The notes beneath the pieces were generated by a model that was given only the letters and a program-made list of their open reading frames with translations, searched no databases and was not told where the DNA came from. This document shows positions 34,135 through 42,302 of a stretch of DNA of 64,000 bases, in pieces. The DNA is taken from the NCBI GenBank assembly GCA_964035545.1, contig OZ037768.1:21497700-21561699 (forward strand). The letters are read 5' to 3'. The position numbers and the translations under genes are program-made. Origin of the DNA: Bugula neritina. Its lineage: Eukaryota; Animalia; Bryozoa. Position 1 is the stretch's first letter. Each line of letters starts with the position of its first letter.

Positions 34135-37100
34135 ATGTCACATAACCCAACATACGACCCCGAGCTAGACTACAGTGAGGATCACACAGCACACTACTAC
34201 GAAGGAGACAGGTCAGGTCGTTCTACACCACGTCAGTATACAAACTACCCCTTGGGAGACCAACACAACTCCAGCAGTATGGCAAGTTACAGACAAGCTA
34301 CAACCGGCCCTCCACAATCTGACACTGCTGGTAATGGCAAAAGCTATCGCTATGCTACGGAAGCTACCATACCCGAAGATGAAGATGAGGCCGACCATGG
34401 TCAGGTGGCTGATTCGCGCCAGGTTCAGTTCTCAGAAAGAGGCCCGTCATCTAGCATAGCTAGCAAGAAGTTTGGTGATGGAGAGAGTAGTGGATCGAGT
34501 CTTAAGTTTAAAATACTCATAGTGGTCGCCATTTTACTAGCTGTGCTGTGGGTCATCTTTATGGCTCTGTACATCAGGGAGCTTACGTCAATGAAAACCA
34601 GCCCAGGAGGTGATGTTGCAGGCACAGGTTCTTCTGTTGGTGGCAGTGGTGGTGGTAGTAATTCTCAGGTAAACATAAAATAGTTCATACAAATTTTGCT
34701 AGGCTTTGTTTTACCTTTCCACTTTGAATATGAGTATGGCTGATAGAAACTTTACGTGTTATGTATAACTCATTTCTTGAAAGCCTATTCTTCACGATTT
34801 TCATTTTACTACCATCATTTCTTTTAGTTACCAAGCCATTCTCACCAGCATTTAGGTTTACTCTTCTGTTTATTATGATTATCTCCAGGGCAATTGTTTA
34901 AACAAGCCATGAACCCTTATCCTATAATTTGCTAAAAACACCATGGTTAGTTTAGTTATAGCTTCAATTTTCACAAGTTATGGCCCTTAATCATCTGCCA
35001 CTAATTTTCAGTATACTATGAAGGCTGGTTCCAACTCTTGGAATTTTTTAAAAAGCTCAATAAATAAGTCTCGAATAGTATAAAGCTGTAAAATTCTTCT
35101 ATTAGTCAAGATAGCAGTAATAGAATTCCATGGAATTATGTTTTCGCAACATCATGTGACCTCACAAGGCTAGGTGCGGATCTTGTAAGTTACTTAAACC
35201 CCAAAGGCCTCTGCTGTCAAATCTGTACTGAAACTGTGCTTGAAGTGACAAACTACAGTTAGACATTCAAAGGGGGACAACCCATGTTTTACTCTTTAGA
35301 GGGATATAGTAAATAGGGGACCAATGTTGGCCACTAATGAGATCTGGTTCTGTTATTTATAAGAATCTTTTTTCTTGGAAGTTTTTAGCTCTGCCTTTAA
35401 ATCTGAATCTGAGTTGTGATTTTCCAGTTTCAAAACCAGTTAACAGCTTAAGCTGATTCTATTTGTTTAAGTGAAGTTTAATTTTCAAATTTTACCTGCT
35501 GTACTTTGACCTACCTAAGCCGCAGTTGAGTGACTGCGCAGTTGGTAGTTTAAAGTAGGTCACTCCGTAACGTTTTTATGTCAGGATATTAAGCTATAAG
35601 AGGTTATTGATAGGAAAATCCAGTAATAATGCAGCTGTTATATTCCAAGCACATCGAATTCAAAGCCATGTTGGAATTATTGTGTGCTCAGCTGTGATAG
35701 CTAGTCACAGTTCTAGATTAACTGAATACTACTACTAGTAGTACTACTCCATCAACTTCAACTTCTCTTCCTCGGTAATTCATCATGTCTTTTATGAATA
35801 ATTAATCCTTAGCATTCAATAGATGGTTATGAATCACTTCAGCGTAGCAACATCATTAATCTTGTCGCATTGTTTTACACACTCCATGCCATGTTTCTGT
35901 TACATCTTTCGACCAATGACAGTAGATCTGACATTTGCAGAAGTTAATAGAGTAAAAGACTCAACAAATTTTAAAAATTTGATCAATTAGTGAGCATTCA
36001 CAAACTGATGTTAGTTGTTTTGTTACCTACTTACCAAAAAAACCGATGAATCTATTGAATCAAGTTCTCACAGAAGCTATGAGTCATAGCAACTAAAAAC
36101 CTGTGTATTTAGTGTTAAATAAAGTGTTTTGACATTTGAAAAATGATGTTTCAGTGAACCCATGCTTGTCTCTTGCATTCACCAGGGCAAATTTCAAGTG
36201 CCTGTTAGTTAGTTTAAACTACACCCAGTTTACTAAACGGTAGCAAAACCTATGCATGTAATTAGAATTTAGATTATAGATTATAAAGATATACTTTAAA
36301 TACTGCTCTGGCATTTACCATTCTTGGCATTTAACTGGAAGTCAACGGCTTTCTTTAGTAAAGGCTTCATTTCAGTCATTAAGCATGCTGTGTTGTGATT
36401 TTTAGTTCTAAAGCTTCTATACACAAGGGTTGATCATGGCGTGTTCTCCTAGGTGTTGGTGCACTGATTAACTACCCATATTTTTGCCAGTTGCTCACTT
36501 TATTACTAGTTTTCCATATTCTAAACTCAGTTTTTAGCTGTTTTAAAATTTCTAAATATATTTCAATAATTTTCCTAAAATTTGTTTTTCCAAACTCGGG
36601 AGGTATTTTGGTTTTAGTATTTCATATTTCCGGTATCTTTTGTATATACACCGAAACTCAAACAGAAATTTCAATTAAGTTGTGTTCTTAATTGCCAAGT
36701 TTGTAGAACGTTCAGCTGTCCGAATGTGGAGAATTAGTAAACATTACTTGTTTCTGTATTGCAGTTTGGTAGTGCAGTGTTGCATGCATGTCCTTCAGCT
36801 AACTTCTTTCTTTAATAGAACCACTGCAATTCCAGGCTGCATTGCTACCAGCTGAAGTAACAGCCATCACAATCATGCAAATTTTCTCTTACACTTTTTG
36901 TATTTTTTAAGAACTCTTGTTGGGGTGTGTCCAGCCTAACACACATCAGTTTCTGTCACTCAAGCTAAGCCGCACCTCTTTACCATAAGTGAGCTCTTGC
37001 TGCTGTAATTTTACTGAGTTGTGATTCACTTTAAATTTGGAAACTAAATATGTATTATAGAACTATTAAATATGATTAAGTGATAACCTGCTCTAAACCC

Positions 37101-40100: not shown

Positions 40101-42302
40101 TAATAGCATAATTTCATTCAGATTTTGAAATTTGGCCAAGTTATGGCTTTGTCAAGGTGTATGTCTTATGTTTGTATTTTGAATGGCTAGTTAAATTTTC
40201 AGGTATATAATATTTTCTTAAATAAAAATTGTGTCATTTTATTTTTCTATATGGTTTTAGTTGTTGCTGATAACAAGTTTGGAGCCATTGATGGACCTAT
40301 TTGTGGTGAGCTTGCGAACAGCATGCATAAGGTTCGTATGTCAATCTGTACACTCTGTTTTTAGATCAAAGATAACTAAGATATAGTATATAAATAACAT
40401 CTCATGTCACTTTCTTTTAAAAGCTCAAAATATTTTTGTACTTGGCACTAAACTAAATGTATAAAATTATTACAGCCCAACATGATAAAAAAAATCTTGC
40501 TACGCCTTGTTTTAATTAATAACGGGTGGAGGTAGGTTTACCATCTCTTTGCAGAGAATTGGTAGTATTGGTTTACAGGCTATTCTGTAATTCTGCAGAT
40601 AAACTACGATGGTGAAACTGATGAAACTACCGGAGAGGTGAAGTTTATGACGACGGCAGCCAACATGGACGTGGTTGTAACTTACAGTCTGTCAGAAGAC
40701 GACAAGATTACTGTACAGATATCCGCCACGTCTGCGGGCAACACTGAACCTATGGTAGACATGTGCAGCAACATGTTCTTCCAGCTCATGACTGGCACGG
40801 TAATTAACCTTTACTGCAGCTTTTTCTTTTTTTATCATCTGTTATAGTATTTCATTATATGCTGTGCGTTATATAATAAAGAATGCGGTATAATTTGTAA
40901 TATACAATATAGTGCATTATATAATGCAAGCTGTACAAATAGTATATTATACAATGTGCTATACGCTATATATGATATAGCACATTGTGTAATATATTAT
41001 ATATATATATATATATATATATATATATATATATATATATATATATATATATATATATATATATATATATATATATATATATATATACACACACACACAC
41101 ACACACACATATATATATATTATAGAATAATTTTTATTTTATGAAGTGCTCATAGAGTGAAACTTGGTGAATGTTGAAATAAACTTTAATTAAACACAAT
41201 TTTCCACACTAGATGGCATTGTGATATCTAGAAAAAATATTACAGCAAGTAAACCTAAATATTTTAGTAGTTGAAGCTGCAACTCAGATCAAGTTTTTCT
41301 ATGATTGACTGAATTTACTTCATATTTTTAGGAGTCTGCAGACGATCACAGACTCATGTTGAATGCAGATAATCACTTTGATAGCGGTGAGTGTTAACTG
41401 CATATTATACTTGCTGTCTGCATGTTATACTTGTTGTCTGCATATTATACTTGCTGTCTGCATGTTATACTTGTTGAATTGCTTGCATCATGTCTAATAC
41501 AAGATATACTAACATGTTGGCGTATTACGTTGCAGGGCCCCCAACCCCAGTTGGTAACATCTATGACTACAGATCCACTAAACTAGTCAGTGTTCTCCTT
41601 GACTACATCCTGCTGGGAAATTCCAACACACTGAGAATAAATGAAGAATTCCTTTTAAATGGTGCCCCTGGACTACGCAAAGCTGCTGAGTATGCATTAT
41701 TTCTTGTGATTGGCTGATTGAATGCTTTCTATTATCTGATTGGTTAATTATATTGTTTTTGTGCCTCAGTGCTTACCTGGTATTGAACTGATTGTAGGCT
41801 ACAGCCCGCAACCAATTCTCCCAAAGTGACCATTCAAACCAATCAGGATGCAATTTCTCTGATGATAAACACTGACCCCAATTACTCTGTCCAGGGAAGA
41901 ACTGAGTATAAGGCACGAGAGTTTGTTGGTCTGTTTACCCACAGTGCACCAGATGCAGTATGTCATATACTCTCAATATATTATATTGTACTTGGACGTA
42001 TATTTTTCAATATCCTTATACTGTGTTTGTTTTGAGAAATCATTCCTGTGTGATAGGCTTCTTTTACATTAATTCAGCATAATATTATGAAAAGTGCAAC
42101 CTAATATTTGTATAACATTTTATAACTTCTGTTAAGTAATTTCTATACGATTTTCATAATTGGTTCTTGTTTTTTAAGGAGTTGTGTTCTTTGTGTCATG
42201 TATTCATTACACTTGACCTCTACTGTTTTTTAGACTGATAATAGGAAGGTATTGAAGCCAGGTTCAGTATACCAATCTACCACTGTGTACGCTCTACCCT
42301 AG
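34135..42302 (+). CDS. Predicted type II membrane protein with a C-terminal aldose 1-epimerase (galactose mutarotase)-like domain lacking catalytic residues; 503 aa, 11 exons
   Basis: Exons 34135-34668, 37345-37377, 38978-39034, 39267-39301, 39734-39876, 40261-40331, 40599-40799, 41332-41386, 41536-41689, 41798-41957, 42234-42302, all phase-consistent. TM helix at aa 127-147. GALM-like segments in the correct order: [77 protein letters not shown]. Confidence 0.85.
38455..38562. repeat. (CTA)n/(CTG)n compound microsatellite
   Basis: Seen directly; intronic. Confidence 0.85.
39495..39625 (-). mobile_element. tRNA-derived SINE, family B
   Basis: Reverse complement reads GGGGTTAGAGCG...GGGTTCGAACCCC...GACCATTGGTGATGTTAGGAAGGGCATCCAGTCGTAA. 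Confidence 0.75.
40998..41120. repeat. (TA)n-(CA)n-(TA)n compound microsatellite
   Basis: Seen directly; intronic. Confidence 0.95.

Follow-up and report, generated by a model that had tools for sequence, protein, structure and literature searches.

A predicted membrane-anchored pseudoenzyme of the galactose mutarotase family in the bryozoan Bugula neritina

Has a housekeeping sugar epimerase been turned into a non-catalytic membrane protein in a bryozoan? The question is raised by a gene in a 64,000-nucleotide stretch of the Bugula neritina genome (GenBank assembly GCA_964035545.1, contig OZ037768.1, positions 21,497,700 to 21,561,699, forward strand), referred to here as the window; coordinates are positions in the window unless another contig is named. 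The initial annotation of this stretch described a membrane-anchored, catalytically dead homologue of galactose mutarotase (GALM). In the explanation that we consider best, held with about as much credence as doubt as judged from sequence and by analogy, the gene would encode a type II membrane glycoprotein whose outer domain is a pseudoenzyme of mutarotase fold engaging a partner protein. The anchored architecture taken by itself is very probable; given this architecture, a putative protein-binding role, argued by analogy, is somewhat favoured.

Gene model and origin of the domain

The gene lies on the contig designated C4 and comprises 11 exons (34135-42302, plus strand). Local translation from the coordinates gave 503 codons with no internal stop; all ten introns are of the GT-AG type and the phases are compatible throughout, which confirmed the intact reading frame described initially. 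Exon 1 (34135-34668) encodes a hydrophilic N-terminal tail presumed to be cytosolic (residues 1-126; 34135-34512), a transmembrane helix or signal anchor (residues ~127-147; 34513-34575) with no amino-acid change between this and a second assembly, and the start of a membrane-proximal stalk (34582-34668). The stalk continues through a Ser/Thr mini-exon with phase 0 at both ends (exon 2, 37345-37377) into exon 3 (38978-39034), which encodes Ser/Thr/Pro stalk sequence and the first strand of the domain. A single hydrophobic window was found in the 503-residue protein by hydropathy analysis (peak 3.3 at residue 127; all others at most 1.3), and hydropathy and inspection of the sequence revealed no signal peptide at the N-terminus. 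Ser/Thr make up 39%, and Gly 17%, of the 59 residues that follow the helix. Hydropathy and composition thus agree with the hydrophilic 126-residue N-terminus, single helix and Gly/Ser/Thr stalk of the initial annotation.

The remaining exons encode the GALM-like domain: exons 4 (39267-39301), 5 (39734-39876), 6 (40261-40331), 7 (40599-40799), 8 (41332-41386), 9 (41536-41689), 10 (41798-41957) and 11 (42234-42302), the last containing the final strand and the stop codon. Searches were run with single exons or with database proteins (P0001, P0005 and P0006), where P0001 is a protein from the second assembly covering exons 3-9. P0001 scored 39.3 bits against Pfam PF01263 (Aldose_epim; E 6e-10; cut-off 27), whereas single window exons alone scored below the cut-off (exon 5: E 0.013). 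The best PDB matches of P0001 were galactose mutarotases, its ESM Atlas model (pTM 0.68) superposed on aldose 1-epimerase with a template-modelling (TM) score of 0.77 over 232 residues and 29 of its 30 ESM Atlas feature matches fell within the aldose 1-epimerase family. Against a canonical GALM profile, exons 5, 7, 8 and 11 gave z values of 7.2, 9.5, 4.4 and 7.5 relative to shuffles; exons 9 and 10 alone gave no significant alignment. A fold search with a low-confidence AlphaFold model also placed mutarotases at the top, but it was biased by the input alignment and adds nothing.

An intact GALM gene with all catalytic motifs is present on Bugula contig C3. Six of its seven introns are matched in the window gene in place and phase, among them the phase-2 intron of exon 4. 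These six common introns indicate that the domain arose by duplication of the animal's own gene and not from a bacterium, and horizontal transfer from a symbiont was ruled out on this ground. By its sequence, the domain is a GALM homologue and a member of the aldose 1-epimerase family (PF01263), an assignment borne out by the Pfam score, the ESM Atlas superposition and the intron positions.

A paralogue was located on contig C9 (G000:C9, 2525918-2519170; L014 7919-1171, minus strand). It consists of a helix exon, two phase-0 stalk mini-exons (one with a Cys) and eight dead-GALM exons. The helix exon matches that of the window at 14 of 35 residues (E 4e-4 in 40 kb), with a common Leu-Trp and a common Ala-Leu-Tyr-Ile end, and overall 109 of 283 residues are identical (38%), the eight domain exons having identical phases and the same deletions. 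Since the C9 helix exon accompanies the same domain exons, helix and dead domain were duplicated as one unit.

Loss of the active site

The catalytic pair of the L. lactis mutarotase is His170 and Glu304. In this enzyme the sugar is held by Arg71, His96, His170, Asp243 and Glu304 (PMC5622589). In an unambiguous alignment, the catalytic His (L. lactis 170, human 176; motif TNHxYFNL) is replaced by Asn349 in the window protein (exon 7, 40770-40772), by Ser in the second assembly and by Tyr in the C9 paralogue, so that the initially reported loss of His176 stands. Asn81 and the adjoining Arg (71/82) have become Gly283-Glu284 in exon 6 of the window gene and Asp-Thr in C9. The ANRI segment had been listed as missing; with three aligners it was found to be present in substituted form (GPICGELA in place of GRFANRIA), and the deletion, of 26 codons, follows it (exon 6 is 71 nucleotides long against 149 in GALM). 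The acidic DGEEGYPG loop is deleted from exon 7, as first reported.

Two further positions were placed by the length and phase of their exons and by register, with no significant alignment behind them. The position of Asp243 in the best register is probably Asn412 (exon 9, 41640-41642; diagonal against the Bugula GALM exon, p ~0.09) in the window protein and Tyr in C9. That of the catalytic Glu (304/307; CLETQ) is probably Phe474 (exon 10, 41934-41936) in the window protein and Leu in C9, exon 10 having the phases of the GALM exon (2 to 0) and nearly its length (160 against 163 nucleotides). The initial claims that Asp243 was lost and that Glu307 had become Phe are probable by position; the exon 10 alignment is not significant alone. 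In this stretch of exon 10 the paralogues have no Glu in common. An Asn-x-x-His motif before the exon 6 donor (NSMH in the window protein) is kept in both paralogues and had been taken for the surviving His107 motif. This is a toss-up: when the second gap is charged, placements of His290 with one deletion (equivalent to the Asp of FDK) or with two (equivalent to His107) score about equally.

The window protein has only two cysteines, Cys282 (exon 6) and Cys347 (exon 7), both new relative to GALM, at former active-site neighbours and kept in C9; the strand around Cys282 has ten residues identical in both paralogues. A disulfide between them across the collapsed active site is possible, at the level of a guess. 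Judged on its residues, the domain lacks the features of an active galactose mutarotase (EC 5.1.3.3) and is catalytically dead. As the catalytic and sugar-binding residues have been lost and differently replaced in the two paralogues, selection appears to keep the fold and not the pocket.

This pattern bears on the first alternative, a membrane lectin or sugar sensor whose cleft would bind a glycan (of a bacterial symbiont, food or matrix) through new residues. The ancestral fold does bind monosaccharides, the conserved Asn-x-x-His may be His107 and rapid change in the stalk would be in keeping with recognition. Set against this, Asn81, Arg82 and His176 are replaced, as probably are Asp243, Gln279, Tyr281 and Glu307, with replacements that differ between paralogues; to our knowledge, lectins derived from dead enzymes usually keep their binding residues. 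A galactose lectin is disfavoured because the sugar-binding residues are among those lost, and a lectin of any kind is regarded as unlikely. From the original proposal of a binding module or lectin we therefore retain the binding module.

A second soluble GALM copy was observed in tandem with the intact one (G000:C3, ~24282100-24285600; L013 4633-1148, minus strand). Its catalytic His is kept, but Phe occupies the place of the catalytic Glu and the DHN motif contains Arg; by its sequence it is probably a third impaired mutarotase. Phe at the Glu307 position is common to this copy and the window protein. A PF01263 match on contig C7 was set aside, as by motif it looks like a separate glucose-6-phosphate 1-epimerase type.

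Topology, transcript and selection

An intron-containing copy of the host GALM gained upstream helix and stalk exons, lost two loops and its active site, and was then duplicated to give the genes on C4 and C9; each copy is intact at the least, if not transcribed, and evolves under purifying selection. In the proposed mechanism, the helix would act as a signal anchor that leaves the tail cytosolic, with the GALM fold carried by a glycosylated stalk, either extracellularly or in the secretory lumen. There, the beta-sandwich and opened cleft may bind a membrane or secreted protein (an adhesion partner, a ligand, or an escorted transporter or channel) in the manner of 4F2hc and neurotactin, and the conserved tail may bind sorting adaptors or scaffolds through its NPTY, paired SYRxA and RVxF-like motifs.

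An N-in orientation with the domain outside is suggested by a slight charge bias, the sequons, the stalk and the tail motifs. The placement of the domain is predicted from the high Ser/Thr content of the stalk, from two sequons kept in both assemblies (N265 at the end of exon 5 and N456 in exon 10) and from the cysteine pair kept in C9. The tail contains NPTY (residues 4-7), two SYRxA repeats (51-55 and 70-74), an acidic patch and the RVxF-like motif (95-99); exon 1 gave no Pfam or ESM Atlas match. The repeat region of the tail resembles, at equal spacing, the cytosolic C-terminus of a membrane protein with a sushi domain encoded on C7 (E 0.004). The C7 protein (G000:C7, ~1652300-1656000; L039 6647-6309, minus strand) is of type I and possibly Mesh/SUSD2-like; its tail has three KSYRVAV repeats, one of which fits the MAGUK GK-binding consensus.

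Several points weigh against an anchored, protein-binding pseudoenzyme. Motifs as short as those of the tail can occur by chance. The MAGUK GK-binding motif R-x-x-S-Y-x-x-A requires Arg at -3 (PMC10171801), where the window repeats have Ser and Asn; their resemblance to it is treated as a lead only. Charges flanking the helix are +1 and 0, which is a slight bias. The 5' coding exon of the C9 gene was not found. An AlphaFold model of the truncated domain (pLDDT 45) was too poor to bear on a disulfide or the cleft shape. Finally, NCBI annotates two genes, a 181-residue single-exon gene and a 252-residue one, and no read, nor any RNA contig from three studies, was seen to span the junction of exons 1 and 2.

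The weak charge bias would also suit the reverse topology, in which the tail lies outside and the dead GALM domain, tethered to the cytosolic face, might regulate or localize active GALM or Leloir enzymes, as would the cytosolic location of the parent enzyme. The mucin-like stalk, sequons and conserved Cys pair are nevertheless on the domain side and the motifs of the tail are of cytosolic type, and a hydrophilic N-terminus of 126 residues without a signal peptide is rarely translocated. We consider this arrangement quite improbable.

Very improbable is a new ecto-enzyme, in which the fold has been re-tooled for another reaction with a rebuilt active site. The strong constraint around Cys282 would fit such a protein, as would His290 and several Asp residues that are common to the paralogues; this His/Asp set, however, lies away from the known catalytic positions, the pocket positions are not conserved between paralogues and the two share no Glu in exon 10.

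The NCBI gene calls and the unseen exon 1-2 join would alternatively fit two genes, one for a single-exon membrane protein of 181 residues and another for a soluble dead GALM; the exon 1 frame does reach a stop five codons beyond its donor. RNA contigs cover exons 1-6 and show the joins 2-3 (as a loose end in one run, X4), 3-4 (in four runs), 4-5 and 5-6, and a query of transmembrane and stalk sequence for junction-spanning RNA fragments returned no matches. The join is absent from the contigs because the sampled animals carry a different stalk, at which the contigs break: loose ends of the RNA contigs at 34581 agree with the stalk version of the second assembly. Contig depth, a crude measure, is ~245 in exon 1, ~0-10 in intron 1 and 230-370 at the joints of exons 3-5 (three runs). 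This drop of about thirty-fold at the donor implies that intron 1 holds no 3' untranslated region, as a stand-alone exon 1 gene would need. Splicing joins exon 2 to exon 3, and the RNA contigs showed no other expressed exon upstream of exon 2. Exon 1 has a strong donor that is conserved between the assemblies, the indels before it (6 and 9 bases) are multiples of three and the same helix lies upstream in C9. Two separate genes are accordingly given only a slight chance, and the exon 1-2 join, as judged from depth, donor and paralogue, is held to be highly probable; it would correct a split gene model.

Between the two assemblies, the domain differs at 21 synonymous and 15 nonsynonymous sites (ratio of nonsynonymous to synonymous rates, dN/dS, 0.20; p 6e-6) and the tail at 17 and 2 (dN/dS 0.027; p 4e-10). 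The tail is thus the most constrained part, though it is predicted to be unfolded. The C9 domain gave dN/dS 0.20 (p 3e-4), and by these ratios both genes are under purifying selection. The possibility of a decaying pseudogene, suggested by the loss of all recognizable active-site residues and two loops, is negligible, being refuted by dN/dS far below 1 in every region and opposed by an open frame in two assemblies, spliced RNA and a second intact paralogue; the gene is live, as the initial annotation had argued. The 29 residues just outside the helix (34582-34668) are by contrast barely alignable between assemblies, remaining in frame and with the same donor, against a background DNA difference of ~8%. 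Their divergence may reflect diversifying selection or mark a cryptic species.

A bolder extension may be stated, although we think it rather unlikely to hold in full. The two proteins would be bryozoan-specific surface receptors made from a housekeeping sugar epimerase, the remodelled cleft recognizing a symbiont surface, a neighbouring zooid or a settlement cue, the conserved tyrosine-motif tail signalling or internalizing, and the fast-evolving stalk differing between cryptic Bugula types.

Other features, range and known systems

Additional exons of the gene were considered and rejected. Within intron 1, possible Ser/Thr cassettes near 35740 and 36820 have the wrong phase or stops and RNA depth at background, and an intron in the 5' untranslated region (34048-34133) was ruled out by RNA contigs that continue through it. 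Three blocks of intron 1 (35400-35800, 36200-36400 and 36800-37000) differ by 3-4% between assemblies against ~10% around them and show no RNA enrichment; one has a Ser/Thr-rich reading without a usable splice phase, and the blocks are possibly regulatory. Intron 4 contains a short high-copy repeat (39425-39600) that is very deep in all RNA runs. An insertion before exon 6 in the second assembly (window 40255-40262; L016 11670-11716) creates an acceptor 6 bases upstream; RNA uses this acceptor, which adds two residues.

Elsewhere in the window, an exon of a class I (Trp/Tyr) tRNA synthetase (~28450-28820, plus strand) lies upstream of the gene and a PTPLA/HACD exon (~48430-48740, plus strand) downstream, in the same order in the second assembly. 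An intact-looking retrotransposon of the long interspersed nuclear element type (16567-20060, plus strand) carries ORF1 and an endonuclease-reverse transcriptase reading frame of 923 residues. At 52317-55460 (plus strand) there is a receptor tyrosine kinase (PF07714) whose ectodomain is very short. Long simple repeats at 9400-11200 and 43690-45190 (one rich in trinucleotides, the other of GT over 1.5 kb) create spurious long open reading frames.

When exon 7 was compared with 1.84 billion representatives, only Bugula matches were obtained, apart from two repeat proteins taken as chance; a hypothetical Bugula neritina database protein from the second assembly is 96% identical over this exon, which bears out the origin of the window from this species. 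Homologue searches with P0001 gave no relative outside Bugula among proteins of 139-441 residues, a range in which orthologues of ~500 residues are invisible, and a metagenome scan gave no relatives. The combination of helix and GALM domain was found within Bugula, in the C9 paralogue, and nowhere else in these length-limited searches. The literature yielded no report joining bryozoans and mutarotases or describing an anchored dead mutarotase. The protein is apparently undescribed, and is conserved within Bugula as two paralogues; the lack of precedent noted initially holds for the GALM family, while dead-enzyme type II ectodomains are known from 4F2hc and neurotactin.

If the proposed reading is correct, the mutarotase fold would join the short list of metabolic enzymes turned into non-catalytic ectodomains in animals. 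The steps are legible within a single genome (the intact GALM, the tandem copy lacking only the catalytic Glu and two anchored dead copies), and this graded series makes the birth of a pseudoenzyme directly testable. The reach is limited to one species complex so far and to a role proposed from architecture, in a candidate surface protein of a bryozoan studied for symbiosis and settlement.

Among the closest known systems is GALM itself (aldose 1-epimerase, PF01263; human 1SNZ, L. lactis 1L7J and the Bugula C3 gene), which has the same fold and family and, in the Bugula gene, six intron positions and phases in common. The window protein differs from it in the added helix, tail, stalk and two cysteines, in the replaced active-site residues and in the two deleted loops. 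Neurotactin of Drosophila is a type II protein with a long hydrophilic tail, a likeness to the window protein. It is a transmembrane receptor and adhesion protein with a catalytically inactive enzyme ectodomain (PMC1876224), which in this case has a cholinesterase fold, a known ligand (Amalgam) and no sequence relation to the window protein. The periplasmic P1 domain of YidC is a membrane-tethered, extracytoplasmic mutarotase-like sandwich whose cleft has no sugar-binding motif (PMC4252904); it is part of a bacterial multi-pass insertase and the resemblance is structural only, whereas the sequence of the Bugula domain recognizably derives from animal GALM. The plant protein NbAELP is a GALM-family member of the secretory pathway with a non-housekeeping role (PMC5622589), but has a cleavable signal sequence, no anchor or tail and all five active-site residues. 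A parallel in architecture is 4F2hc/CD98hc (SLC3A2), a type II protein with a dead sugar-processing enzyme as ectodomain and a wide cleft proposed to bind proteins (PMC8537225). The cytosolic N-terminus, single helix and dead-enzyme ectodomain of 4F2hc would all have counterparts in the window protein with its predicted topology. The ectodomain of 4F2hc is a GH13 barrel with a neck cysteine linked to a transporter, while that of the window protein would be a mutarotase sandwich with no neck cysteine; the stalk of the C9 paralogue does contain a Cys.

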